A stretch of 63,553 bases of DNA, the filler included, from Intoshia linei (Eukaryota; Animalia; Orthonectida): NCBI GenBank assembly GCA_001642005.1. It is 8 parts of 8 records of this genome, joined end to end, with 100 filler letters (N's around TTAATTAATTAA, not from the genome) between each part and the next. Parts side by side here need not be neighbours in the genome. Positions count along the whole stretch, not along the records: positions 37,619 to 52,610 come from LWCA01000932.1; 7 more parts are not named here. One strand, 5' to 3'. A model generated the notes under the pieces. The model was not told the DNA's origin and did not search any database. It saw only the letters and a list, made by a program, of their open reading frames with translations. A program made the position numbers and the translations under genes. The number at the start of each line of letters is the position of its first letter. Within the stretch, counting starts at the first letter, position 1. Below, piece by piece: positions 36,674 through 52,718 of the stretch.

Positions 36674-39500
36674 AATCTTATAAAAATAAAAAAATATTAG
36701 GTATATTTAATTAGTTCATTAGTTCACTAATTTAACTGTACAATGTATTCTAGTAATAATAATACAAACAAAAGAAAATATTTAATATCGTTTATTTGTC
36801 GTTGAGACATTTTCATCAACAAACTATTCAAAATAAAAGTAGAAGATATATCATTAATATATAATTATTTAATTTCAAACTACATTTTCGAATTATCATT
36901 CCATTATAATGACATAAGGTAATATATTTGAATATTAATATTTATTAATACATAATAGTGAATTTACTAATACACAAAAAAAAATAAAAATTTTGCTACA
37001 TTGTATTTTACTTTAATTTAAACTTAAGTTTAAATACTTAGGTTTACTGTAGTCTAAATCTTATGAATTTTCCATTTTATATTTTTGTGAATTGTCATTG
37101 TTTTATATTGTATGATTTGTAAATAAAAAAGTATACAATATAAATATGTATTCAATGTTGGATAATTATACATTATAATGTATAGTATCACATGTCTCAG
37201 AATGGTGATTGAATTTATTAGACAGAAATTATGCGATAAGTCAGTATCGATTCGATTGTAGTGCAAATTGTTCATATTTTCATGGCCATTGGCCAATACA
37301 TGAATACTTGATGAAATATAATAGGTCCCGAACTCGGTATATTTTACAATTATGAACGTTTTTTATGATAAAAATAAGTGATCTCATTAATTCTGTGTTT
37401 AGAAAATTTCTTAATTAATTTAAACAGTATCGAATTAATAAATTGGATCTTTTCTGTTAGATGCCTACCACACATGCTTATTCATGGCTATGAAATTTTA
37501 AACGACTACCAACATTGANNNNNNNNNNNNNNNNNNNNNNNNNNNNNNNNNNNNNNNNNNNNTTAATTAATTAANNNNNNNNNNNNNNNNNNNNNNNNNN
37601 NNNNNNNNNNNNNNNNNNACAGAGCGGCTTCGGATTATCGACCCTTGATTAGAGCTAAGAAGTGATATTTCCACTTAATGATCCATGGAATTAATGCTCT
37701 AATGATATACGCATGGCATATGTACCAAATGATTCATCAATGTAAAATGAAATTACAATTCACCTTACCTTACAATTACCTCAATTACAATTTCGAAGAA
37801 GCGTAGTTCTTGCTGCAATTACTACATCATTTTCTTCGCCCAACAACAGGGCCTCAGTTAAGAGTATCGACTTCATCTCGATTTGATGCAGTCGACCATG
37901 TACCTATTAGTACCAAGAAGATGTATTCTGTGTAAAAAGAATTGTCGCATAAAATGCAATAAATGCCAAAAAGCCTTACACATTAATACTTGTTTCCAAA
38001 ATTATCATTCAGAATTTGAATAATAAAATTTTATTTTAATGCTTTTGACTGTAATATTTTAATTTTGTTAATTACATTTCGATGTAGTAGTTAACTTAAC
38101 GGGGTCTACCGATGTATTCGTAATGATATAATTCAGCATGACAAGTTTTTAAATCTTTTGTAATAGAAAAATCATACCTTCAATGTTATTTACGATTTCT
38201 TTCAATTAATATTTTAGTCTTTGACATCTAGAAAATATCGGTTCAAACAACGATAGTGGATGAAATATAGATATACATACGAATATGAATAATTATGCAA
38301 ATGCTTGTAAATAAAATATAATACTTTATGACTAAATGAAAAAAATGATATTGAAAAGGTTACATTTTATTATTGACTTTAGTATACATTCAAATATATT
38401 ATTTTTTATGTTTGCGGCCATAAACGCAAAAATTGATGGAATTAACGGAAACTACAATAATTCCTAAAATGCTAAAGCAAACACCTAATGCTACTCCACA
38501 ATTAAATAATTGATTGTTATTTTCGTGCATGTCAATAACTAAATAGACAATTAAATAAAAATAAAAAGTTTGAAAAAAATAAGATAATTGTGTAGAGTCT
38601 TAATCATCAATATATTATAGTTGATTTATACGATTTTAAAATATTACGAGTTTGAGCACTGCATGCCAATAGAAAACTTAGAAAAAGTAGAAACGTATAC
38701 ATTTTATAACTATCTGCAAATGTAACTATGTATTTAAGGTCATAATATTGAATTTCGTATCGTATATATTTAATCTAGTTTCCATAAAAACTTTGTATTT
38801 AGCAGTCTTTGTAAACATTGATATAATTGTTGTTCTCTTAATATAAATAATATATTGATAAATTGCCCTATAATTATTGTAACAAGGTAAAGTCAAAGCT
38901 AGGCATTTATTCTTTCATTCATTTATTAGATAGAACAATTCTATAATTAATTTTCAATTTCATATATGAAACTTAACGATTTGTATTCTATGATACATGA
39001 TATGATATATGCAGTAAGATTATTATTTTTTTAACTTCTTATATCAGGGTTCTATACCTTTCTAAATAATACCCCTTTACGAACATACATGTTATATACG
39101 TTTTATTAATTCAAATATAATAAAATTTTATTTTGAGGTACTTTTTCATATTTTCATAAATAATGAATAATTTACTTTTTAAAAAAAAAGAAAGAATGAA
39201 AGGCACATAAAAACAATTGTTTAATCACAACAGAAACTTTTCTATTGACATTAGTAAAAAGTTCTATTTTATGAAAAAATATATAATTTATTGGTCGATG
39301 AACAATTATTTGAGATGTAAAAAAATGATTGCATTAACTCACTTAATGAAAATAATACATTATATCTGTAAATCACATGGAAACTCACGTCAACTTTAGG
39401 CATCCTCAGGGTTAGAGGTTGGTCAAGATTCTTAATTTTGATTGATTTAATTCAAAGTAATATATAATATCGCTCAAATTTAAATAAAAAATATATTGTC

Positions 39501-41682
39501 ATGATAAATGAAATTGATAATTTTGAAACCAACAATTGCATAGTTAATTATGCTCGAGGAACTTATGAATCTGCTGATTTAAATAATTATCTACGTGGAT
39601 GTAAATGGTAAAATCCAAAATACATTAAAGATTTGAATTAGAAAGTGGTTGATATAAAATTTATTTGCTAATATATTCCATATTTATGTGAAACCCAAAA
39701 AATATTAAAAAATATGATTTGTCATTCCCTTATCATTAAAAAAATTTACTCAAAGAAGTTTACTATGTTGACAGTGATAACAAAATATTAAATATAATTA
39801 CACGGAACTGGTGTCTGCCAATATCTGAATTTTGAATCTAGAAAAATATATGAGAAAATTTGATATATTTTCCATAAGATTCAATTTTTATATAATACTC
39901 TCTTTAATTCTAAATATAAGTTTTATTCACACCAATCACCAAATTTAATAATATTTTAGGTATTCTAAAGATTTTAATTACATTTCAACCAATTCAAATG
40001 ATCATAAAATTAGAATTTTTGAGTACACATCTGATGACAAACGAGAAATGGTAGTATTTATTTTGTATTCATATATATTTTTTTAGGAACCAATTTTTGA
40101 AATATTCGAGCCTCAACCCATTTACGATTTTGAATGGTGTCTAAATGAGTATGTTTTTTAAATCCATTAAAAATTAATTATTATAGAACATATTCCAATT
40201 CAAATTGTATTTATAATTTTTAAGTCTTTTTAATTACAACTCAAAAAATTATATTTGAGATGGAAAGATTTTTTTGTTGATACTTTTCATTTTTTCATCC
40301 CATTAATTCGAAAAAGACGGATACGTTTTATATTTACAATTTTAGACCAATATTGATGACAACTAGTAGATACGGTCCAGTGCATTGTTGGGATTTGAAA
40401 TCAGATTCACCAATCTTGACATTTAGCGAGCGTTGTCATCAAGATACTATATTGAGTGCATATAGTTTGAAATCGTCAAACTCATTCGGATACTGCGGAT
40501 ATAATGGATTTATAAGTTTAGTTGATTTTGAAACTGGAAAAAATAGGGAAAAGCGTATTTTAAAAGAAGGTAAATGCAAATAACAAATCAATCATGATTT
40601 TTATATTTTAAGTTACCAATTGCAAAATGACAATAATTTCGTCAATTAATGTAAACCCCGCAATGAATAGTGTTTACGCGTGCGGATCCTACACTGGCAA
40701 TATTTGTTTGTTTGCAGAACCTGATGGTACATTTATCTGTGGATTTGGTGAATATTCTAGCGGTATATCCCAAATAAAATTTTCAGATGATGGTCTTGTC
40801 ATTTATACTTGTGCTCGCAAGGTTATTTTAAATAATCTTACTCTAAAATTAAATTAAGTTTAATTAAATTGAAAGTTAAAGTATGTTTCTTAATACAATC
40901 GTAGTTTTTAAATACGACAATCATTGGCATATTTTTAGGACGACAGAATAATTGCATGGGACTTACGAAACCCAAAGACATTTTGGAATGTTTTTAATCG
41001 AAATTCCACCACCAACCAAACTATTGGATTTGATATTTTTGGGTAATTCATCTGTTTATAATATATAGAGAACCCAAAACTTTTTTACTATGGAAGGGAA
41101 AATTTCACATCCATTTTTCATCGACAACCTAAAATTTTATTGTTACCATCCATTACCATATTATGATTAAGATTTTATGTTTAGTTTAATATTAATAAAT
41201 GTCGTATTTCATAAGAATACATAAGGTTACATACATACAACCTATTTTTCGGTAAATCTGGTTTATATCAAAAAATAACAACCAGTAATAATAATAACCC
41301 GTTTAGTGATAAGTTGGTATCTGGAAGCACAGATGGATATGTACATTTATGGAGCCAGAACAAAGAAATGTACAAAAAACGCAAAATATGTCAGACTGTA
41401 GTTAACGATGTTAGGTAATTTTATAACTAACTTGTTTAATATTTTAATAGTTTCCACCCATCATTAGAGATAATATCGTGTTCTACTGGAAATCGGGCGA
41501 AAATGATGTTCATTGAATCAGACTCTGAAACAGAAACAGAAAATTCAACTGAAAATGTATGCATTAAATGCAAACAAAAGATAAATTCAAACAAATCCAA
41601 AGTTCCCACAAATTACAGCTTGTTTCAGGCTCAATTCCATTATCAAAATTGTTTATATTTAATTGATATCAATAATATATAA
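39501..41682 (+). CDS. WRAP53: Telomerase Cajal body protein 1 (WRAP53/TCAB1/WDR79), WD40 protein
   Basis: Spliced: NNYLRGCKW|YSKDFNYISTNSNDHKIRIF; IYDFEW; TTSRYGPVHCWD; IISSINVNPAMNSVYACGSY; GISQIKFSDDGLVIYTCARK; DRIIAWDLRNP...NRNSTTNQTIGFDI; LVSGSTDGYVHLW; VNDVSFHP...CSTGNR. Colinear with WRAP53 motifs. Confidence 0.93.
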
Positions 41683-42719
41683 AATTTTAAATGAAAAATA
41701 TTCGGCATATTTGATGATTGGTAACTGAATCGTTACAACAATTTCTGTATATGTAATTTGTAAAAAGAAAAAATGTAACAATTTTATTTATTTTTTATAT
41801 TGATTTTAATTTAAATTTAAACCAAATTACACAGTTGTTGAAGTAATTTTCGATATAAATATTTCTGAACAATACTTTTCTCGCAACAAATACGTTCAAA
41901 ACCCCTACTGTTAAGCACCATAACAAAGTTTGTATTACAGCGATGACCCGTATTAATTTTTTAACTTGTTGAGCTGACTCAAAAAAAATTATAGAAACGT
42001 TTCAAAAATTTTTTGCAATATTTCTCCGTTATTTAAAGAAGGTTAAATGGACTAACAGTGCACATTTCGAATGATAATGAAATTACAGATGATATGATGA
42101 TGTTGGTCTTGGGTTAAACTTTAATTTTAACCGTTAAAGTATACTGATATATACTAAACACTTTCCTATAAGTACTACCTGTCCAAGTAAACACATCTTC
42201 ATCATACAATTATTACAACAATAGTAATGACCAATTATTAGTTAACTTTTAATCATCTTTGAAATTTAAAGATTATAATTATAATAGAATTCCAACTTAG
42301 CCGTAGTACTGTAATCGAGTATGTATGACTTTTTTCAAGTGGTCGTTTAATGATCAATAATTTTAGTCGAAAATTCTAATATAATGCGTTCCTAACGATA
42401 GTACTGCTGAATTTTGTTAAATCTCACGTCATCTCTAGATAAGATAAGAGTTCGTCTCCAGCTTTAAACAACAATGAATTAAACATGATGGAACATATTA
42501 TGTATTCTTTGAGATTGTCATGACTCGTGAATCTAATATCCCAGTAACCGTGATATGTGTCAATATTTATAATATAGATGTATGGTTACATGGCGCAATC
42601 AGTGATAATCAGTATAACTTCTATACAAGGATACTTATACGTAAACAAATGCTTAACTATTCGAACAATTCATATTTTTCTAACATTATCCATATCGTTT
42701 GAATTCCTAATTAGCAACT

Positions 42720-43238
42720 ATGAGAACTTTAGAAATGGACCATCGTATGCAAAGTTTGCACCAATGCCAATCAGAATGTACATCAATTGAATTGGATGAC
42801 TATATACCACCTGATTTTACAGCACCACCTTTAAATTTTAATCAACGTCCTCCGGTTGCACCGGAATCTCAATATTCTTGTGATTGGATGCCTGGAGCAC
42901 ATCTTTACAATAAATGCAGATATTCATCATCGGAAAAAGATAACCTAATCTACCACTTTTATGGTTCACACATCAGATCAAGTTTTGTTCGACATGAATA
43001 TATTTGTTATTGGTAATAAATTTGATTATAAAAATATGTAAGTATGTAAATAACACAATTATTTTTTAGGCAGAATTGTACTAAACATGGAGAAACATTA
43101 GGTGATCTATGTGAATTGATGCAACACTGTCGCATTCATACCGGAGAAAAAATATTTAAATGTGATCATTGTAATTCAAGCTTTGTCACTTGGGAGGAAT
43201 TTATAAACCACTTGACCACGTACCACGTAATTTACTAA
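42720..43238 (+). CDS. C2H2 zinc-finger protein with Zic/Gli-type tandem CW fingers (3 fingers); true 5' end may lie upstream
   Basis: YSCDWMPGAHLYNKC...LIYHFYGSHI; intron 43013-43069; YICYW|QNCTKHGETLGDLCELMQHCRIHTGEKIFKCDHCNSSFVTWEEFINHLTTYH. Confidence 0.78.
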
Positions 43239-43922
43239 CCCTTTCTATTTCTGAGTCATTATTTGAGATGCTTTAGAAATTATAAATTAAAAAATTTTTA
43301 TACTGTTTTATTTATTATTTGAAACTTTGTAAAACGTTTTGTATTACCTTTGTCTTATAAGTTGTAAAATATAAACTAAAATAGTTTAAGATGTAATTAG
43401 AATCATAGAAAAAATTAATGTTCATTTAGGAAAATGTTCGGATACCTCGAGACCATATGTATTATGAATTGAGAAATATGGATATGCGATTGTATCCATA
43501 AATAAATACATTGTTTTACATATTAAATTTTTTTATATTTATTAAAAACTATAGATGCAAAGTTCCATTTATATTCTTTGCATATTCTCATCTTTTCTTC
43601 GTCATTCTGTCTAAAGTCTTGTGATTCATACAGATCTTTGAATAATATCAATTAATCATAAAGTGCATAATTTCCCCAAAAAGTTCTGGTTATATATAGC
43701 TGATATTCCTGATGTGAATAAAAAAATAAAATAATTTAAGAAAAAATTGAAACTATGCTATCGTTAAATAAATAACATTTTCGTCTAATAAATAACTCAC
43801 GAGAGTCTCGTCTCTTACAAGTTTCTATAAATATAATTGTTGCTGGAGCACCTAGAATATAAAAATTTAATAAATAATTCGTAATACCATATAGTCACTA
43901 CCCATGAACCTATAATATAGAG

Positions 43923-44091
43923 CAGGGTGTCAATTATGGAATTTGCTCCTGCGTTATAAAAAAAATTTTACATATTTACTTATGTTTTATTATATTTTAA
44001 TTAATTAAAACTGTTAGTTTAATAATGATTTGAGTAGAGATATTTTTTTGGTCACATTTGGCCGCGTAGCAAATTGAGTCTGACATCGCTG
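43923..44091. mobile_element. Short hAT MITE
   Basis: CAGGGTGTCAA ... CTGACATCGCTG; TSD atatagag/atgtagag. Confidence 0.75.
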
Positions 44092-45481
44092 ATGTAGAGT
44101 CCACATGTGAAAGTTGCATTTTAAACGTAAAATATTATTATTTACAAGATATTGAAAAATAAAAATTTTTTAAATGCTCAGTTTGATAAGATAAGGCCTA
44201 CATTTTACAAAAATTTATTTATGGCCCTAGGACTCCATAGGCTCTAGTACGGTAGTTTCAGTTGTGGGTTGCATGATGTTTTGTACGTTATAAACATAAT
44301 CAATTTTTCTTACGGAAATGCATATTTGAAATAATGCGAAGCGCATTTAAAAAAACATTAACACGATAATGTCCACTTATTTCCAATAAAACGCTCTTAC
44401 ATAAATAAACGTACATTTAGTTTACAATTAATAAAATAAACTTCAATAATTTAAATTATATTACCAATTTTTTATGACTATGAAACATACAAGTTGTTCG
44501 TTTAAATCAGTAGCAGTTTTTGCTGCATTATCATCTGTTACCGTTCTTTTCCTCAAATTTTCACACAGTAGTAATTTTCAAATTTTAGATAAAACTTAAA
44601 ATAGCTGTAACTACACCAAAAAGAATTAAAACATTAGTAGTTGTAACTTCATCATTATCATTGGCTACCTGGTAATGACATTTAATAATTATAATAGAAT
44701 ATCAATAAATTATACAGGGGATATTGTATTGGCAAAAAATACAAATCTAGTGATTTTTATATTAACAATCAATTAAAAAACTACTGTGCTAAAGAAACTG
44801 ACGAAATTAGAAAAGCTTTTGACGAGGACAATTAAATACAGTAACTTTGTAAATATAATTGTAAATTTTAAATTTATTAATAAAATACAAATCTATAAAT
44901 TTAAGAGTTGTAATATACTTTTTTGTAATTGTTCTGCTCCAACCTGTTCCTTTTCGATCAATATTTCTTCTAATATAAATTAATTAAATTTGTAATACAA
45001 TGTTTTACAACGCATTAATCTCAATAATTATCACTTTTACTATTCAGTTAAATTTAATCTATCCTATTTATACTCAGATTCAAATGTAAAATTCTTTTTT
45101 ACAAAACCTTAAAGAAAAAATTAAATTTCATTATCCCTTATTACAGTGTTTTTCAAATACGGGTCCGCGAACCAATACCAGTCCTCGAAAAGAATTTAAA
45201 ATTGTTAATTTTAATATTTAATATTATCACTCAATAGTTTATTTATAACGTTTTATATCAAAATTTTTTTAATTGTCTAATAATTTCGATTTAATGGCCC
45301 GCAATAAATTTTATAATTTATAATTGAAAGAGGTAAAAAAGTGTGAGACCCCTTTCATATCACATATTGTGTACTTATCTACCTTATTTGTAAGTTAAAA
45401 TTGATAAAACGAATTTTTTCATGTGCATGTATTAAAATAAAAAAGAATTATATTTTTATTTTCTACATATTAAAAATATTA

Positions 45482-48331
45482 CTTTCAGTGTCAGGATTTA
45501 TTTTTTCGCAGTTTTTTCCAATCCATCCAGGTAGACATTTACAATAATATTGACTTTGTAATTCGATACAAACTCCATTATTTTTACATGTATCATCTTT
45601 ACATATTTTTAAATAAATTTCACAGTATTCTCCTTTGAAATTATCGCGACAACAACAGCCTTGATCATAGCAATATCCGCCATTGAAACAAATTGTATTT
45701 TCAGAACAATGTTTATCTAAATCTTTGGAATTTTGATAATCTGGTGTTTTAATTTCACAATTTTCTCCAGTCCAACTTTCTAAACATATTTTTTCACCAC
45801 TATTTCCGTCGCATTTATAGTGACCATCGCATGTATCACTGGGTATACAGTAAATGTCACATTTCAATCCATAGAAATTGTCTGGACAGGGTAATCGACA
45901 ACCATAATTTGCTATTTCGTAACCTTCAAGGTTACACTCACAGTCAAAATACCCATATGCTGTTATTCTACATTTTGTCATATCACATTTTTCAATATTT
46001 TGACAGAAATTTATATCATCCCTAGTGATACTGCAATGCCGACCAAAGAATCTAAATACTCTATAACTCAATGAATGTACTAAGAATACCCAAAATTGCA
46101 AATGCATTGATATGTCCCATTATTTGGTTGACATGTACCATTTATACAAGGATTATCTTTGCATACATGGTGTGAACAAAATTCTCCGTAATAATCTAGA
46201 TACATTATAAATAGTAGATTTGATGAATATACCTCCCGGACAAGCACATTTGGTATCATCTGATCTATCACTATACCTTAAACATTGTCCATTGTTTTGA
46301 CAAGGATTGAAAATAATTGTGGAAACTAAATTTACAATAAATTACTTTTTAATAGTCAATATTACTTTTTGAAATGTATTTCTCAAATATTAATCTTGAG
46401 TTCACAGGATTTAATGAGTTATCAATTCCGCAAATACGATTAAATATTTTTTGTATTTCTTTTTTCACATTCTCCGATTGCGCAAAATCTTCTAACGAGT
46501 CAAATGAAATGACTAATGATGGATCAGTTGCCAAATTTTTCCAAAATACTGGATAACCATTAGGATGTAAATCAAATATTGTACTTTTAATTACAATGAC
46601 TATTAGGTTTTGGTTCATTTTTATTATATCCGCTTCTCGGTTAGCTTTCTCAATATCATACGGTTTTTCTCCATCTGTAATTATAATCAATACATTTGGT
46701 ATTGATTCATTTAGTACTATATTTTTATGTGGGTCTGGAGAATAATCATATTTAAAATTCCCAAATATATTATATCTAGTTTCGTTCAAGGCTAAACCAA
46801 TATTCGTCTCTTCGTTTAAAAATATTACTTCTTCTATGGCTGTGCTTATCAAAATATTTTTATGATCATATTCGCTAAAGGATTTAACTATGTCTAATTT
46901 TGTACCAAATGCTGAAAGGGCCCATTGTACGGATGGCTTACGACTAGGGAGTGTCGTGACTATTTGTCGAGCTAATTGTTGATAATAACCCCAACTTTTA
47001 GAAATATCATCTCCGTATTCCTGGACACTACCTATGTATATATAATCATGTTAAATTTTTTGTATTAATTGTAAATTGTGTATAGCAGGGTCGGAATCCC
47101 ATGACCCACAGAATAATTTTGGTAGCCCTTTGAGTAAATATGTAAATTTTTCAACTTTTCATCACTTTTCTACCATAATTAGCATTTTAACTCTGAATTT
47201 TCAATCACTCTGGATATTATTTTGTTGAATATACTAGAACCGTTTCACTTCAGTTAAAATTGAAATTTATCATGTGTAAATTTTCAAAAACGGGGCCTGT
47301 AGAGTTTTTTGATAAAAAGGTTTCCGACCTCTGGTGTATAGTGCCTATATTATTATAATTTTAAAGGATACACTACAAACTTTTAATTTGAATTAATACC
47401 TGAGCTATCTATCAATAAATCAATTTGCCATCGATTACATAAAACTAAATGTTATAAAAAATAAACACAATAAAATACATTCTTGGTTGTAAAATGGACA
47501 AATCTTATCAGTTTGAGAATTGCAATTTTCACCATTCCAATTATCTAAACATATTTTGCTCCCATTTGCATCACAATTATAATGCCCACTGACATCATTA
47601 ACATCCTTGCAGTATATTTTGCATTTTGGACCGTAATAGTTATCCTGACATTTAGTTTCCATCACAAATTGCAAATGACTTGTTTCGTTTCGTAAACCAT
47701 ATGCTGCCAAAATATGATCTTCCATTGGTCTATTAAGCCAAACAAACGGGGTTAAATCAAGGAATAAATTGTCTACTACTTCGTTTTCATCTTCTATGGA
47801 GATATTTATTGATAATATTAAATCCAAATTACCATTATTAATATTAAAGACTCCAATAGTTAATATGATACTGTTCTAAATGGAATTATTAAGCTGTTAC
47901 ATAAACAGTTACCATCAATTTGAAATGCATTTTAAAGTCAATTTCCAGGTCCTCTCGGTATAGCAATTCTTTTCTAAAATCAATATAATTTAGCAATTCC
48001 TCGGTGGGTCCTAATGTGTATTGTGTTTGTTTCATGTCGTCTTTTAAAAGTCTGTTAATTTATTGTTAAATATTTGACAAAATTTTTAATTACGTATAAC
48101 TTTCAGTTAAGGCAAAGTAAAATTTAAAACGACACACATCAATATCATCACAATTACTCAATCTGCAACATTGACCGTCAGCTTTTAATCCATTTTTATT
48201 ATCGTAGTTTAACAATTTTATTCGAATTTGAATATTAGAATATTCTTCTGCAAGAGTCACAAACTAAATTATATTTTAATATATTTTGTGTCAATTACAT
48301 AAAAGGTAAATAAAAGGCACAAAGTCTTCAT
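45482..48331 (-). CDS. Notch-ligand-like secreted or membrane protein: SP-MNNL(C2)-DSL-vWA-EGFx3-DSL-EGFx2; 3' exons (possibly to ~43550) unresolved
   Basis: Exon 48299-48331 MKTLCLLFTFY + FVTLA (signal peptide); IQIRIKLLNYDNKNGLKADGQCCRLSNCDDIDVCRFKFYF (MNNL); CQDNYYGPKCKIYCKDVNDVSGHYNCDANGSKICLDNWNGENC (DSL1); IDLLIDSSGS...ETNIGLAL...PNVLIIITDG (vWA); three EGF repeats; CPDNFYGLKCDIYCIPSDTCDGHYKCDGNSGEKICLESWTGENC (DSL2); two EGF repeats. Junctions are GT-AG and in phase. Confidence 0.88.
47086..47333. mobile_element. hAT MITE in the intron that splits the vWA DSS|GS motif
   Basis: CAGGGTCGGAA ... TTCCGACCTCTG with perfect TSD gtgtatag. Confidence 0.88.
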
Positions 48332-48857
48332 TTAGAAATTTGGATAATTGAAATATATTTTTTAAATTGTTTATGATTTTATTATTAAACTAAAGTATAG
48401 AGTTATTGTTGATTTATACTCATGTGTCTAGATATCGGTATATTCCAAGAATATTATGGGTATATTTTGAATTCTTCAACGTTAACCAACGGAACGTTAT
48501 GGAAATAAAAGAATATTATTCCATGCGTGACTAAATTTTTCAATATCTATTGTGATAGAAAAATTTACTATTTAGACATCTTAGTAATCGTATATTAAAA
48601 TAATTATTTCATACTTGAGAATACACGAATCGATAAAGATTTTATGAATTATATTCTATTTTTATTCTTGTATAAATAACAGCTATGAATTTTTGTCAGT
48701 TTAATCTTGACAATTCCATCTATATATAACAAAAACATTTCAGGTTTTATAATATAGACGTTCACGTCTATGAACAGAGATTGCGAGAATCAGGTGTATA
48801 TATGGTCTAGAGAGAGACTAGGGAAATAAAATTCTAAATTAATAGGTAATGTTAGAA

Positions 48858-48909
48858 AATTTTGTATGATCAATATAACATTTATATGTTATATTGATCA
48901 TACAAAATT
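48858..48909. repeat. Perfect 24-bp inverted repeat with a 4-nt loop
   Basis: aattttgtatgatcaatataacat-ttat-atgttatattgatcatacaaaatt. Confidence 0.95.
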
Positions 48910-51900
48910 CCATGTAAATTATTCGATCGGGCACACAATATCTTGTTAATTTAAAAATGTTGGTTTAATTGTAACCTCTGTGGATCCATTAAAACAAATT
49001 TATTTTACTAAATCTTACTAAATCAACTTAAATTAAAGATTAATAAAAGGTTAAAGTGTCCCATTTTTTATATGTAGGTCTTAATGTTCATGTAACCGAG
49101 CCTCTGATAACTCTACACGGTCCTGATTTTCTACTATTTTTAATTTGCTTTATAATAGTAAATAGGTTTGATTATTTATCATTGTGATATTATAATAATT
49201 TACGTATTTGTAATAATGATTTATATAATTATAATAATTACTAACAGTACAGGAATCACATTTAAAACAATTTTCATTTATTCTTTAAAACCAAGGCCTC
49301 TTATCAATTTTTACCTGCGAACCCTTGATTAATCAACGTTACGTTAAAATTAATATGCCGTTTGCATTGAAACAAACATGCACAAAAACTAAAACTTGTT
49401 ATGTCACTCTACCAAAATATTTATCAAAATAAATATTAATAGAATAATATTCTGCGAGAAATGTCGAATCAACTTTTGATAAACGAATAATGAAATTATT
49501 ACAATAAAGGACATCTCACATTTATATAGTGAAAACTCCAACAAAGATAATGTTAAAGAACGGTTGGCATCCCTATCTAAAACCAGGAAAATATAAACAT
49601 GATTTCTTCCCAAATTTTAAGGATATTTTTAAGTATGAACAAGTGGTTCGCTTTTTCAGACACCCGAAATTCTCCGGTTCTTACCCTCCCTGCATGTTAA
49701 AATGTTTAATTGTCCATCCGTACATCATTAAATTTTTTATTTGGTTACCATCCGTACTACATTAAAAATATCATTAATTAAAAAATTAATATGGCTCTTA
49801 TTCTAAAAACGTGACCATCCAATATGCAATTAAAAAAATATTGTGGTTTATATAAAATAAGTATTATATTATGGGTAATTTTGTAAAAGGGTTAGGAAAC
49901 ACTGATTTAGAACAATATTCAATGTTATCTTGTCATATATGACAGAATGTAACAATCGCATTAGTACTAAGAGCCAAAAAATAAAATTGATAAATTTGGT
50001 GGGCTGTATTTGAAAAACTTGAAAATTTTTAGTTTATATAAAGTTGAAAACTTATCAAATATACGATATCCTAAAATGCATTTGTTCTACATATACTAAG
50101 AATATTATAATCTTTTTATGTCAAAATAATTGAGTGGACGTTAAAAAAACAAAAATTATTCAATTGTCTTAATTATTAAAAAAAGTTATGAGTGTATGAA
50201 TTGACTAAAAACTGTCAATTTGATATGATATTTATACATGTCAATTTTAAGTAACATAATTAATGGGTAATTATGTAATCATAGAGTCATTATGGAGCCA
50301 CTCGGGTGAATAAATTGACGTTACATTGTAGTTATTTCGAAATCTCAGCATGATTTATGAATGTGGTACTTGTAATATGTTAGGGTCAGAATGCCACATC
50401 AAATGAGACAAAAATTTAAGATATACATTGGTTTTTTGTGGGATGATATATTAAATTTTAAAGTTGTATTGTTTTTTTTAAATAAAAACTTATGGTAGAC
50501 TTTAGAGCGTAGTGTCATTGAAAATTAGTGAAATGTCTTAATTAATCGTGGGGTAAATACAATAAACTCAACAAAAATTATTGGAGTGTTAAATTTTCTT
50601 TAGAAATGGCACGTGGCATTGACTTTAATGATTTGAAGAGTCCAATTTAATATACATTTGCAGCGAGTCAAAACGAAACTAAATAATTGAGTTATCAAAT
50701 TAATTTAATAAATGCAATTCAAGATATCTGTCAAAAATAAATGTTGTAATCGACCATTTACCAACTGCCTGTAGTAATGTACATTACATAACAATTTATT
50801 TAAATTACTATGAAAGTGTTTGAAATTACAATAGTCAATTTATAACCACACTGGGGAATTTTGTCCCCAAGCGAATTTCTTTTGACATTAATAAGAACAA
50901 GTACATATTTGTATTGTACATTGATTATGTTAATCTGTGATTATCAATTTTTGTTACATTCACGTGTTAATTTATTTATATCTTTTCTCAATATATTTGA
51001 TAATTTCATTATCCAACTGTCGCCAAATCATTGCACTTTTAGTTGATTTAATAAATGTGTTTTTATACGCCATTAAACACTTTGATGAAATTTTAATTTT
51101 CCAAAATAGTTTTGTCAATATTTACTTTACACATTAGCAATTTGTTTTATTTTAGGTTTAATAATAGAAAATGTTTAATATTTGACATTTTTAATTTTAT
51201 TTACAAATTTTAGGGTTAAAGGTTGTTTAAATCTTAAAAAAATGTCAATTTTTAAAAATAAATTGATAAACCTCTTTAGGTGTATCGAAATGTGTAACTG
51301 TTTCAAATAATAAATATACCACATATTGATAAATTGATGCAATCAACTTTCCAACAAGGACTACATTTCATTTTACTAAATATTTGTTTATTAATTGAAT
51401 TTAAAAAAAACTAAATTATTCTAAATTCATCTCGTATAATTGATGTAGTATTGAGGTAAATATCTCAAAAATACTAAAGATTTAATTTCGACAATATGAA
51501 TGCCACACATAACTAAATATCTTTTCATTTTTTTAATTAGAATTGACCAAGAAACTTTCAAATCTTAAAACTTATCTGAGTTCCGTATTACCTAAATATG
51601 CCGTATGCCTAAATATTACAATATAAATGTAAATGTATAATGTAATTAATGATTCAAAAATTAAAAAATAATTTAATAATAGTGTAACTTGATAACTGAA
51701 AGGAATTGTTCCCAATGTATTGATTGATATCCCATTAGCGTATAACACTATTCAAAATATGTTTTGTATTAGATTTATTTCTCTCAATATACTAATTGAC
51801 TATAATTGATTTAAGGATATGAAATTACATTATATGATAAAAAAATTTATTTCCACATGATTACTTTTCTGTTTTTTAAAATAGGTAACATTTTATGTAA

Positions 51901-52718
51901 AACATAATTTACATAAAATATTTATAAAAATTATATAAATTATAAATATTATATAACTTAGAAAAAATATTGGTAATTTTTAATTTTTGTTAAGTGGTTT
52001 CATTTTGTAAAAAACTTTTACATGAATTCGGGACTAAAATACATGAACTGCAATGATAGTACCTGTATTGTCAAATATATTGCAAGTCATCATTTGAAAG
52101 ATTTAAATGTTATATCATTACCACTCAATTACACCAGGGGTTTGAAAATGTCTTTATAAATCGGATAATATAATTCATAAACATTATCAGAATATGTAAA
52201 CACAGTAATATGGTTTAAATATAAATTGTATATAATCACTGTGGAATAAGTAAAAATTATGCGAATATAATAATGATCTATACCTTGATAATTTTTAAAT
52301 CAAATTTCATACCAAAGTGGAAATATATTCTTAACAGATTTAAAAACTTAAATCGATCGATTTTTGATTAGTGTTAGAATTATCAGTAATACTGACTCAG
52401 TATATTCCCAGAGCCGTCATAAGCCACTTCGTGGTCCTGGGCTAAGCAAAGGGTCGGGCCCTTTAAAATCTCTGTTTATAAGACAGGACATACTGTTGGT
52501 TGGAGACTTAGAGTCTTATTTCATTGAGTATTAATAAAAGCATTAAAAGCATTATGTTTTAAATTGAATAATTACCAGAACTTTGATTCTTTAAACTATT
52601 TTCTTTCTAGNNNNNNNNNNNNNNNNNNNNNNNNNNNNNNNNNNNNNNNNNNNNTTAATTAATTAANNNNNNNNNNNNNNNNNNNNNNNNNNNNNNNNNN
52701 NNNNNNNNNNAAAATATA

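Follow-up and report, generated by a model that had tools for sequence, protein, structure and literature searches.

Does the orthonectid Intoshia linei encode, in one protein, the head of a Notch ligand joined to a vWA domain and, if so, what might such a protein do? Few animal domain architectures are as constant as that of Notch ligands (C2 domain, DSL domain, EGF repeats and membrane anchor), and current models of Notch activation depend on the ligand anchor and on the DSL-EGF surface. The question is raised by a locus on LWCA01000932.1 of assembly GCA_001642005.1, which supplies positions 37,619 to 52,610 of the window, i.e., of the whole 63,553-nucleotide stretch of DNA that was analysed. 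On the minus strand of this locus lies one intact gene of 11 exons and non-canonical DSL-ligand architecture, encoding a predicted signal peptide, C2/MNNL, a first DSL (DSL1), a vWA domain with an intact metal-binding motif (MIDAS), three EGFs, a second DSL (DSL2), two further EGFs and a short, predicted tail. Its exons, for which Pfam was searched one by one and also with the whole public protein, are the following:

48299..48331, minus strand: exon 1, an ATG and 11 codons carrying the hydrophobic N-terminal end of a predicted signal peptide; missing from the public protein OAF66441.1.
48094..48263, minus strand: exon 2, the first C2/MNNL strands including a CC motif (Pfam MNNL E 0.0022; AF2 pLDDT 75-87).
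47913..48051, minus strand: exon 3, the middle of the C2 domain, with a low-confidence loop (AF2).
47833..47875, minus strand: exon 4, a C2 strand, followed by a 39-nt intron (47832-47794).
47479..47793, minus strand: exon 5, the last C2 strands, DSL1 (47516-47650) and a CP linker (Pfam DSL 2.5e-15; pLDDT 89-96).
47400..47444, minus strand: exon 6, a clamp cysteine and vWA strand beta1, with MIDAS D235 and S237 at 47409-47401.
46366..47031, minus strand: exon 7, the remaining vWA domain, with MIDAS S239 (47029-47027), T313 (46807-46805) and D357 (46675-46673) (Pfam VWA 2.5e-7).
46233..46325, minus strand: exon 8, EGF-a with five cysteines, the first EGF cysteine missing (Pfam EGF 2.2e-5).
46090..46195, minus strand: exon 9, EGF-b (Pfam EGF 2.9e-4).
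45483..46051, minus strand: exon 10, the cbEGF-like EGF-c, DSL2 (45751-45888; AF2 pLDDT 85-96), EGF-d and EGF-e (Pfam DSL 2.4e-11, EGF 1.3e-8).
44893..44969, minus strand: exon 11, a 25-residue C-terminal tail with a predicted helix, past a 513-nt intron (public prediction only).

Once joined, these exons form one open frame with no internal stops. All ten introns are of the GT..AG type and eight of them measure 34-42 nt, which agrees with the short introns published for this species (PMC6543705: a median of 57 bp, with most above 30 bp). The public deposit of this gene, OAF66441.1 (P0001; 740 residues, labelled "hypothetical protein, partial"), is the model given here minus exon 1, so that a start codon and a predicted signal peptide, the latter recognised by hydrophobicity, are added to a partial public gene model. 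Exon 1 ends at a GT donor at 48298, is followed by a 35-nt intron and leaves the joined frame open. Neither OAF66441.1 nor the combination of DSL with vWA is mentioned in the literature searched, which did not include the I. linei genome paper.

A first-pass annotation made from the sequence had placed a single gene at 45482-48331, with these domains in this order. The order is borne out by Pfam matches to individual exons, by cysteine pattern and, for C2/MNNL, by predicted structure, and every motif that had been quoted is present (DSSGS, TNIG and ITDG; KDVND and IPSDT). That this is one gene is upheld by the open joined frame, by identity with the public model apart from exon 1 and by a collinear open reading frame, P0049, described below. 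The exon structure proposed stands overall, with small corrections. Each of the three junctions lies within 1 nt of its revised position (47479/47444, 47400/47031 and 46366/46325), and one further intron has to be removed, the 39-nt intron at 47832-47794, which the public model P0001 also removes and at whose position P0049 has no 13-residue insert. The donor after the second EGF is at 46089 rather than 46080, which gives this EGF a regular end and avoids an in-frame stop. The public model ends in a further exon (44969-44893), beyond the range first given, and the alternative to this exon is that exon 10 is read through to a stop at 45465-45463. A C-terminal motif that P0001 and P0049 seem to have in common lacks significance, its score being reached in 1592 of 5000 shuffles, and it lends exon 11 no support. 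The 368-nt intron at junction 47400/47031 was considered as a possible MITE and rejected, since its ends carry no significant inverted repeats and the piece contains no second copy of it.

The head of the protein resembles that of a Notch ligand, more clearly in structure than in sequence. Pfam MNNL scores below its cut-off on the exon (E 0.0022; 17.9 bits against 22.5) and is absent from the whole protein. The AF2 model of residues 10-211, however, superposes on Jagged2 (5mw5) with a Z of 15.4 and an rmsd of 2.8 A over 178 residues (VIA), and reaches Z 13-14.4 with DLL4, Jagged1 and fly Delta, as against about 10 with generic C2 domains; the alignments behind the model included Notch ligands, which favours such a match. 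The C2 (MNNL) assignment thus rests on predicted structure more than on sequence. DSL1 is recognised directly, by Pfam and by a PDB phmmer match to Jagged-2 (1.1e-12), and the alignment, to DLL4 as well, extends from the last C2 strand across the DSL. Both DSLs have the conserved DSL cysteines, and DSL2 carries a seventh. What they mostly lack is the Notch-binding face conserved in human Jagged1, formed by F199, R201, R203, D205 and F207 (PMC3415683), the F207A mutation of which abolishes Notch1 binding (PMC3888931). At these five positions DSL1 has Y, K, V, D and S, and DSL2 has Y, I, S, T and D, the F207 position thus being Ser and Asp, respectively. This bears out the first-pass annotation, which had noted that neither DSL keeps the PRDD arginine, but the loss is less special than it implied, because the canonical face is absent from most DSLs of the multi-DSL proteins sampled (kept in only 9 of 99).

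Past DSL1 no EGF follows. Strand beta1 of the vWA domain is reached after 21 residues containing two cysteines, so that, as first proposed, the vWA domain occupies the position of EGF1. Pfam VWA (PF00092; cut-off 23.8) reaches 31.5 bits with exon 7 and 34.6 with P0001, and the MIDAS is complete (DxSxS, T and D, formed by D235, S237, S239, T313 and D357), aligning with mollusc and Owenia vWA domains. The structural neighbours of the domain in the ESM Atlas are matrilin, collagen VI and VWA2 (TM 0.73-0.75); Foldseek gave collagen VI N2 (TMt 0.61) and VIA gave NorD (Z 9.3). The vWA part of the AF2 models is of low confidence in both Intoshia and P0049 (pLDDT 27-59), with the expected alternation of strands and helices in the Intoshia model, and a PDB phmmer search with the vWA exon returned no match. 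In BLASTP, a single alignment covers the vWA and first EGF of the mollusc vWA-EGF protein P0153 (9e-7). There are five EGFs in all, the third and fourth recognised by cysteine pattern only, and DSL2 is followed by an 18-residue linker and the last two of them. No transmembrane segment is present: no 19-residue Kyte-Doolittle mean exceeds 1.08, the 1.1 kb scanned downstream contain no hydrophobic ORF piece, and the segment is absent whether the protein ends with exon 11 or by read-through. The C-terminal helix predicted at residues 712-739 has a pLDDT of 48-58, and Pfam finds no Matrilin_ccoil match in the protein.

That the two halves belong to one protein is indicated by the exon that begins the vWA domain. 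Exon 6 has a same-frame stop at 47454-47452 and no ATG of its own, and it can therefore be reached only through splicing from exon 5 over a 34-nt GT..AG intron. In P0049, moreover, the junction of C2-DSL and vWA lies inside one uninterrupted ORF. With an exon that has no start codon and a collinear ORF as its basis, the fusion is almost certainly real rather than an artefact of gene prediction.

P0049 is an uninterrupted ORF of 846 residues on the 3,025-nt environmental contig Ga0393294_004385 (JGI sample 3300036111; 41% GC). It aligns with the Intoshia protein from C2 to DSL2, collinearly, over 607 columns at 23% identity (BLASTP 7e-32), shares the order of Pfam domains, and for its predicted C2-DSL the match to Jagged1 reaches a Z of 12.7. 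Like the Intoshia protein, it consists of a signal peptide (here a signal-peptide-like leader upstream of the called start), C2, DSL, CP linker, vWA, EGFs and DSL, with no transmembrane segment. It differs in its long Ser/Thr-rich linkers and Ser/Thr-rich tail, in a degenerate MIDAS (QSSKN, V, D) and in a DSL2 with RPRD-type residues (F199, R201 and R203 are kept), and two C-terminal helices are predicted in it (814-827 and 833-845; 10-residue block means about 71-93). As the MIDAS is degenerate in this sole collinear relative, cation-dependent binding is not conserved across the family. The residues kept in the P0049 DSL2 mean that the family may still bind Notch. Pairwise identities among DSL1 and DSL2 of both proteins all fall at 41-59% and give no sign of positional orthology between the two. 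Since a relative of the same order occurs in another organism, the two proteins form a small, undescribed family, proposed here as C2-DSL-vWA-EGF-DSL, of which they are the only known members. Metagenome scans for further relatives of P0049 found none, and in a search for further DSL proteins of Intoshia in the top 150 amino-acid-composition matches, none of the 10 clusters checked was named Intoshia. The homologue search with whole P0001 returned nothing beyond a Delta-like protein of a fluke and two vWA-EGF proteins of molluscs; the last exon gave no match and residues 222-460 matched only themselves, blanks that the length window and word index of the search make uninformative.

With the canonical DSL ligands (Delta, DLL1/4, Serrate/Jagged) the Intoshia protein shares the C2 (MNNL) domain joined straight to a DSL, and EGFs. 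It departs from them in having a vWA domain in place of EGF1-2 after DSL1 (in canonical ligands EGF1-2 are part of the receptor-binding surface), a second DSL and only five EGFs, in having no transmembrane segment or cytoplasmic tail, and in a Notch-binding face that is mostly replaced. The secreted DSL proteins of C. elegans (e.g., DSL-1) likewise have no membrane anchor and can signal; they are short, with one DSL and one or few EGFs, and are not known to carry a C2 or a vWA domain. DSL, EGF and vWA also meet in one annelid protein, CAH1774350.1 of Owenia fusiformis (P0060; 3,394 aa, automatically named 'Delta-like protein'), whose DSLs have, as in Intoshia, an extra cysteine at the Jagged1-206 position and a CP motif about 9 residues past the DSL. 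This protein, which may be a merged gene model, differs in its 15 Pfam EGF matches and three DSLs, with the vWA about 570 residues beyond the last DSL, lacks a Pfam MNNL match and is not collinear with the Intoshia protein. The comparison also points to an eight-cysteine DSL variant common to annelid and mollusc proteins. Matrilins, VWA2 (AMACO), collagen VI-type proteins and the mollusc proteins P0153 and P0154 share with the Intoshia protein a MIDAS vWA, a terminal cysteine clamp and an EGF directly after it, but contain neither C2 nor DSL, and no matrilin coiled coil was detected in Intoshia (no Pfam match, and a low-confidence C-terminal helix). Copines (C2-C2-vWA) also combine C2 and vWA in one chain (BON1, PDB 6kxk; Foldseek 1.4e-6). 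They are cytosolic, lack DSL and EGF and superpose poorly overall (rmsd 23.8 A), and the likeness is one of design, with no evidence of kinship.

What the protein does can be approached from these modules. The reading preferred here, to which we give about an even chance on the basis of domain content, is that it would be an adhesion- or matrix-type secreted DSL protein built from ligand modules, and not a canonical, endocytosis-driven Notch activator. Without a membrane anchor or cytoplasmic tail the receptor cannot be pulled by endocytosis, and it is this absence, together with the loss of key Notch-binding residues from both DSL faces, that points to an adhesion or matrix protein; the suggestion that this is not a normal ligand is strengthened by the missing transmembrane segment. 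The protein would be secreted and would work extracellularly as a matrix- or surface-bound bridge. Its vWA and EGF part, of collagen VI/matrilin type, would tether it to a partner outside the cell (in Intoshia, probably by way of a cation at the MIDAS), and its C2-DSL head would touch a membrane, or an EGF-repeat receptor, of an adjacent cell. Lipid binding by the C2 domain and cation-dependent adhesion, both proposed by the first-pass annotation, may be properties of this protein and are regarded as putative.

A role in Notch signalling itself, whether as a secreted agonist immobilised on the matrix by its vWA or as a soluble decoy or antagonist that would occupy the receptor but exert no pull, seems unlikely but keeps appreciable weight. 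As a unit, the head resembles that of a Notch ligand, both in its alignment to Jagged and DLL4 and in being closer to solved ligands than to generic C2 domains, DSL1 keeps D205 with F199 and R201 conservatively replaced, and the P0049 DSL2 retains the F, R and R. The gene has, in addition, been kept intact in a genome of reportedly fewer than 10,000 genes (PMC11521371). Against such a role stand the residues at the F207 position, Val (DSL1) and Ser (DSL2) at the R203 position, the replacement of EGF1-2 by vWA and the missing anchor; Notch genes in orthonectids are not mentioned in the literature searched, the I. linei genome paper not being part of it.

It is very improbable that the protein is a parasite-specific host-interface factor, secreted by the plasmodium for adhesion to host tissue or for interference with host Notch or integrin-type signalling. 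Predicted secretion, a very divergent sequence and an endoparasitic organism would suit this function, which had been among those first suggested. However, Intoshia is not alone in having this architecture, which recurs in P0049 on a contig of 41% GC at 23% identity (a source that could also be a parasite), and DSL and vWA are found together in one protein of Owenia, a free-living annelid. The design is therefore older than Intoshia, which counts against a parasite-specific invention. Hardly credible at all is that the fusion is a gene-model artefact or one of two products, a short C2-DSL protein and a separate vWA-EGF-DSL unit: retention of the 34-nt intron 5 would end the frame after 13 further, mostly hydrophobic codons, giving a hydrophobic tail, and the unspliced ORF 47435-47827 does have a hydrophobic end, but the beta1 exon lacks an ATG and has a stop shortly upstream in frame, intron 5 matches its neighbours in size and ends, and the equivalent junction of P0049 lies within a single ORF.

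The interest of this protein lies in what has been kept and what exchanged: the C2-DSL head remains, the adjoining EGFs have been swapped for a matrix-type vWA and the anchor has been lost, a design retained in at least two distant organisms and thus a natural test of the C2-DSL head alone, one that could also show whether endocytic pulling is replaceable by matrix tethering. A rather improbable extension is that the C2-DSL-vWA proteins constitute a conserved class, so far undescribed, of Notch ligands or modulators anchored in the matrix, in which vWA-EGF anchorage would replace ligand endocytosis as the resistance that opens Notch. Were it true, this design would have survived in an animal of a few hundred cells whose genome is strongly reduced.

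The DSL-vWA gene of Intoshia linei is real, and its protein is already public as an unnamed hypothetical one. The piece carrying it (window positions 37619-52610) has a GC content of about 26%, and the gene comprises 11 exons, read from the sequence and script-checked, on the minus strand within 48331-44893:

48331-48299, minus strand, exon 1
48263-48094, minus strand, exon 2
48051-47913, minus strand, exon 3
47875-47833, minus strand, exon 4
47793-47479, minus strand, exon 5
47444-47400, minus strand, exon 6
47031-46366, minus strand, exon 7
46325-46233, minus strand, exon 8
46195-46090, minus strand, exon 9
46051-45483, minus strand, exon 10
44969-44893, minus strand, exon 11 (as predicted in the public model)

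All 10 introns have GT..AG borders and the joined frame contains no internal stop, the exons having been searched one by one and concatenated only for the stop count and the comparison with the public protein. GC is 31% in the exons versus 14-27% in the short introns. Eight introns measure 34-42 nt, which fits the published I. linei intron sizes (median 57 bp, majority >30 bp; PMC6543705), and the other two are 368 nt (47032-47399) and, at the end of the gene, 513 nt (44970-45482). The 368-nt intron interrupts the MIDAS DxSxS motif, part of which is encoded on either side, and showed no sign of a repeat or transposon. Among 1.84 billion representative proteins, the C2/DSL1 exon matches P0001 (740 residues) best; this protein is NCBI OAF66441.1, "hypothetical protein A3Q56_05849, partial [Intoshia linei]". 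It is encoded on LWCA01000932.1 (14,992 nt, GCA_001642005.1), exactly the piece at 37619-52610, and is identical to the 11-exon model without exon 1. This exon is an addition to the public model; its 11 codons, followed by a 35-nt intron, bring in an ATG and the first, hydrophobic part of a predicted signal peptide. Exon 11 gains no support from P0049, an environmental relative, since the similarity between the two tails is not significant.

On the plus strand, public annotation places a 378-residue WD40 beta-propeller protein (39501-41682) and a 216-residue C2H2 zinc-finger protein (42720-44835), the latter gene ending only ~60 nt from exon 11 on the opposite strand. The 4.2 kb upstream of the DSL gene (48400-52610) hold no called gene, tRNA or Rfam match; their GC is 19-27%, with one strong GC-skew window (+0.33 at 50119-50618).

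Pfam matches of the Intoshia domains, obtained on single exons.
MNNL: E 0.0022 (17.9 bits vs cut-off 22.5)
DSL1: E 2.5e-15
VWA: E 2.5e-7 (31.5 bits vs cut-off 23.8)
EGF-a: E 2.2e-5
EGF-b: E 2.9e-4
DSL2: E 2.4e-11
last EGF: E 1.3e-8

The third and fourth EGFs were identified by cysteine spacing only. Because the MNNL call is weak by sequence, P0001 was folded with AF2 from a 26-sequence alignment (mean pLDDT 57.9 overall, 75-96 for residues 8-210 and 85-96 for DSL2). Foldseek against the PDB placed Notch-ligand heads on top, first DLL4 N-EGF1 (4xl1_B, E 1e-14), and VIA-align superposed model residues 10-211 on Jagged2 5mw5 chain residues 27-243 with Z 15.4 (rmsd 2.8 A over 178 residues), compared with Z 13.7-14.4 for Jagged1, fly Delta and DLL4 and ~10 for unrelated C2 domains. 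In addition, DSL1 and the preceding C2 strand align to Jagged-2, Jagged-1 and DLL4 (phmmer, PDB sequences, 1.1e-12 to 6e-9). On these predicted-fold matches and this alignment we take the C2-DSL head to be real, with the reservation that Notch ligands were among the sequences aligned for folding.

The vWA domain is very divergent: its AF2 pLDDT is low (27-59) and its exon has no phmmer match among PDB sequences. Its identity is supported by a score above the Pfam cut-off, by alignment of the vWA and next EGF to the mollusc vWA-EGF repeat protein P0153 (9e-7, 281 columns), by an ESM Atlas model of the region (TM 0.73-0.75 to cartilage matrix protein, matrilins, collagen VI, VWA2 and vitrin) and by Foldseek matches to collagen VI N2, integrin I domains and the mussel byssus protein PTMP1. 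The intact MIDAS proposed by the first-pass annotation is confirmed (D235, S237, S239, T313, D357) when the domain is aligned with its mollusc and annelid counterparts. Cysteines lie directly before strand beta1 and after the last helix, with counterparts at matching sites in P0153 and P0049; matrilin-type vWA domains are closed by a disulphide from such a pair.

The hybrid C2/MNNL-DSL-vWA-EGF-DSL order in one gene, originally read from the DNA, is borne out by the GT..AG exons, the open frame, Pfam and collinearity with P0049. The 45-nt exon 6, which codes for vWA strand beta1 and the initial residues of the MIDAS, contains no ATG and is preceded by an in-frame stop three codons upstream. It can be translated only if spliced to the DSL1 exon, and intron 5, which separates the two (34 nt, GT..AG), resembles its neighbours. 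P0049 (846 residues, JGI sample 3300036111) lies on a 3,025-nt contig as a single unbroken ORF flanked by untranslated sequence. Its alignment to P0001 starts in C2 and continues over DSL1, CP linker, vWA and EGFs as far as DSL2 (7e-32, 23% identity, 607 columns), and its Pfam order is the same. Its leader is signal-peptide-like, provided that an upstream ATG is used, and its predicted C2-DSL head matches Jagged1 (Z 12.7). It lacks the 13 residues removed as a 39-nt intron in the public Intoshia model, which supports that intron. Judged from exon 6 splicing and this independent join, the fusion is real. When the 150 best DSL matches were scanned with a local HMM made from vWA segments, only two proteins other than the query proved to carry a vWA: P0049 and Owenia fusiformis P0060 (3,394 residues), whose three DSLs, one vWA and 15 EGFs matched by Pfam stand in a different order.

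Following a long stretch rich in Ser/Thr, P0049 ends in two predicted helices (residues 814-845; 10-residue block mean pLDDT ~71 to 93), and the 3' flank of its contig (L002:2600-3025) has a long inverted duplication that may be an assembly artefact. In Intoshia, retention of the 34-nt intron 5 would let the frame continue (within 47435-47479) through 13 mostly hydrophobic codons to a stop, giving a short C2-DSL product with a hydrophobic end as a possible minor isoform.

The protein departs from canonical ligands in that DSL1 is followed by no EGF: a stretch of 21 residues containing two cysteines leads to the vWA, which sits where EGF1 is expected. No hydrophobic segment was found in either C-terminal alternative, exon 11 or read-through of exon 10 to the stop at 45465-45463 (best 19-residue Kyte-Doolittle mean 1.08), nor a transmembrane-like exon in the next 1.1 kb downstream. 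The Notch-binding face of human Jagged1 (F199, R201, R203, D205, F207; PMC3415683), in which F207A alone abolishes Notch1 binding (PMC3888931), reads Y, K, V, D, S in DSL1 and Y, I, S, T, D in DSL2. The claimed loss of this face holds for most of the residues but is less telling than it seemed, since only 9/99 DSLs sampled from the match list keep the aromatic-basic-basic-aromatic set at these positions, and the second DSL of P0049 retains F, R, R. At the position of Jagged1 residue 206, an additional cysteine occurs in Intoshia DSL2, both P0049 DSLs, all three P0060 DSLs and altogether 17/99 domains (matches sampled including P0049, P0060 and P0071), the named proteins being from an annelid and molluscs; a CP motif often follows the DSL by ~9 residues in P0049 and P0060. 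This cysteine may define an eight-cysteine DSL subtype. Cnidarian proteins with 6 to 13 tandem DSLs and little else (P0002-P0010; e.g., 11 in Nematostella XP_032232843.2, auto-named 'protein draper', and 13 in one from Sanderia malayensis) rank above true Delta/Jagged among matches of the C2/DSL1 exon because their DSL scores add up.

Canonical Notch activation needs an endocytic pull by the ligand, which a protein with neither anchor nor tail cannot supply, and a matrix or adhesion role, suggested by the anatomy, is therefore put first, as about an even call. The protein, presumably secreted, would bridge two partners, its matrilin/collagen VI-type vWA and EGF part binding a matrix or surface component, in Intoshia probably via the MIDAS cation, and its C2-DSL head binding a membrane or EGF-repeat receptor. 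The P0049 MIDAS is degenerate (QSSKN, V, D), which rules out cation-dependent binding as the core property conserved across the family. A part in Notch signalling, either as an agonist tethered to matrix or as a soluble antagonist, ranks second and seems rather unlikely: the F, R, R of P0049 favours it, but the missing pull and the replaced face residues, with S/D at the F207 position, count against it. A parasite-specific form of the host-interface role suggested at first is improbable, being weakened by the environmental P0049, which could itself come from a parasite, and by the Owenia protein (CAH1774350.1). That the gene model is mis-joined, or that intron retention yields a product ending hydrophobically, is very improbable given exon 6, its ordinary upstream intron and the P0049 ORF, and conceivable only as a minor isoform. 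In the literature searched, with the I. linei genome paper outside its scope, there was no statement on Notch, CSL or canonical Delta in I. linei and no mention of OAF66441.1 or the DSL-vWA architecture. Although the protein itself is already in the public record, its architecture, its second member P0049 and the ways in which it departs from the ligand family appear undescribed.
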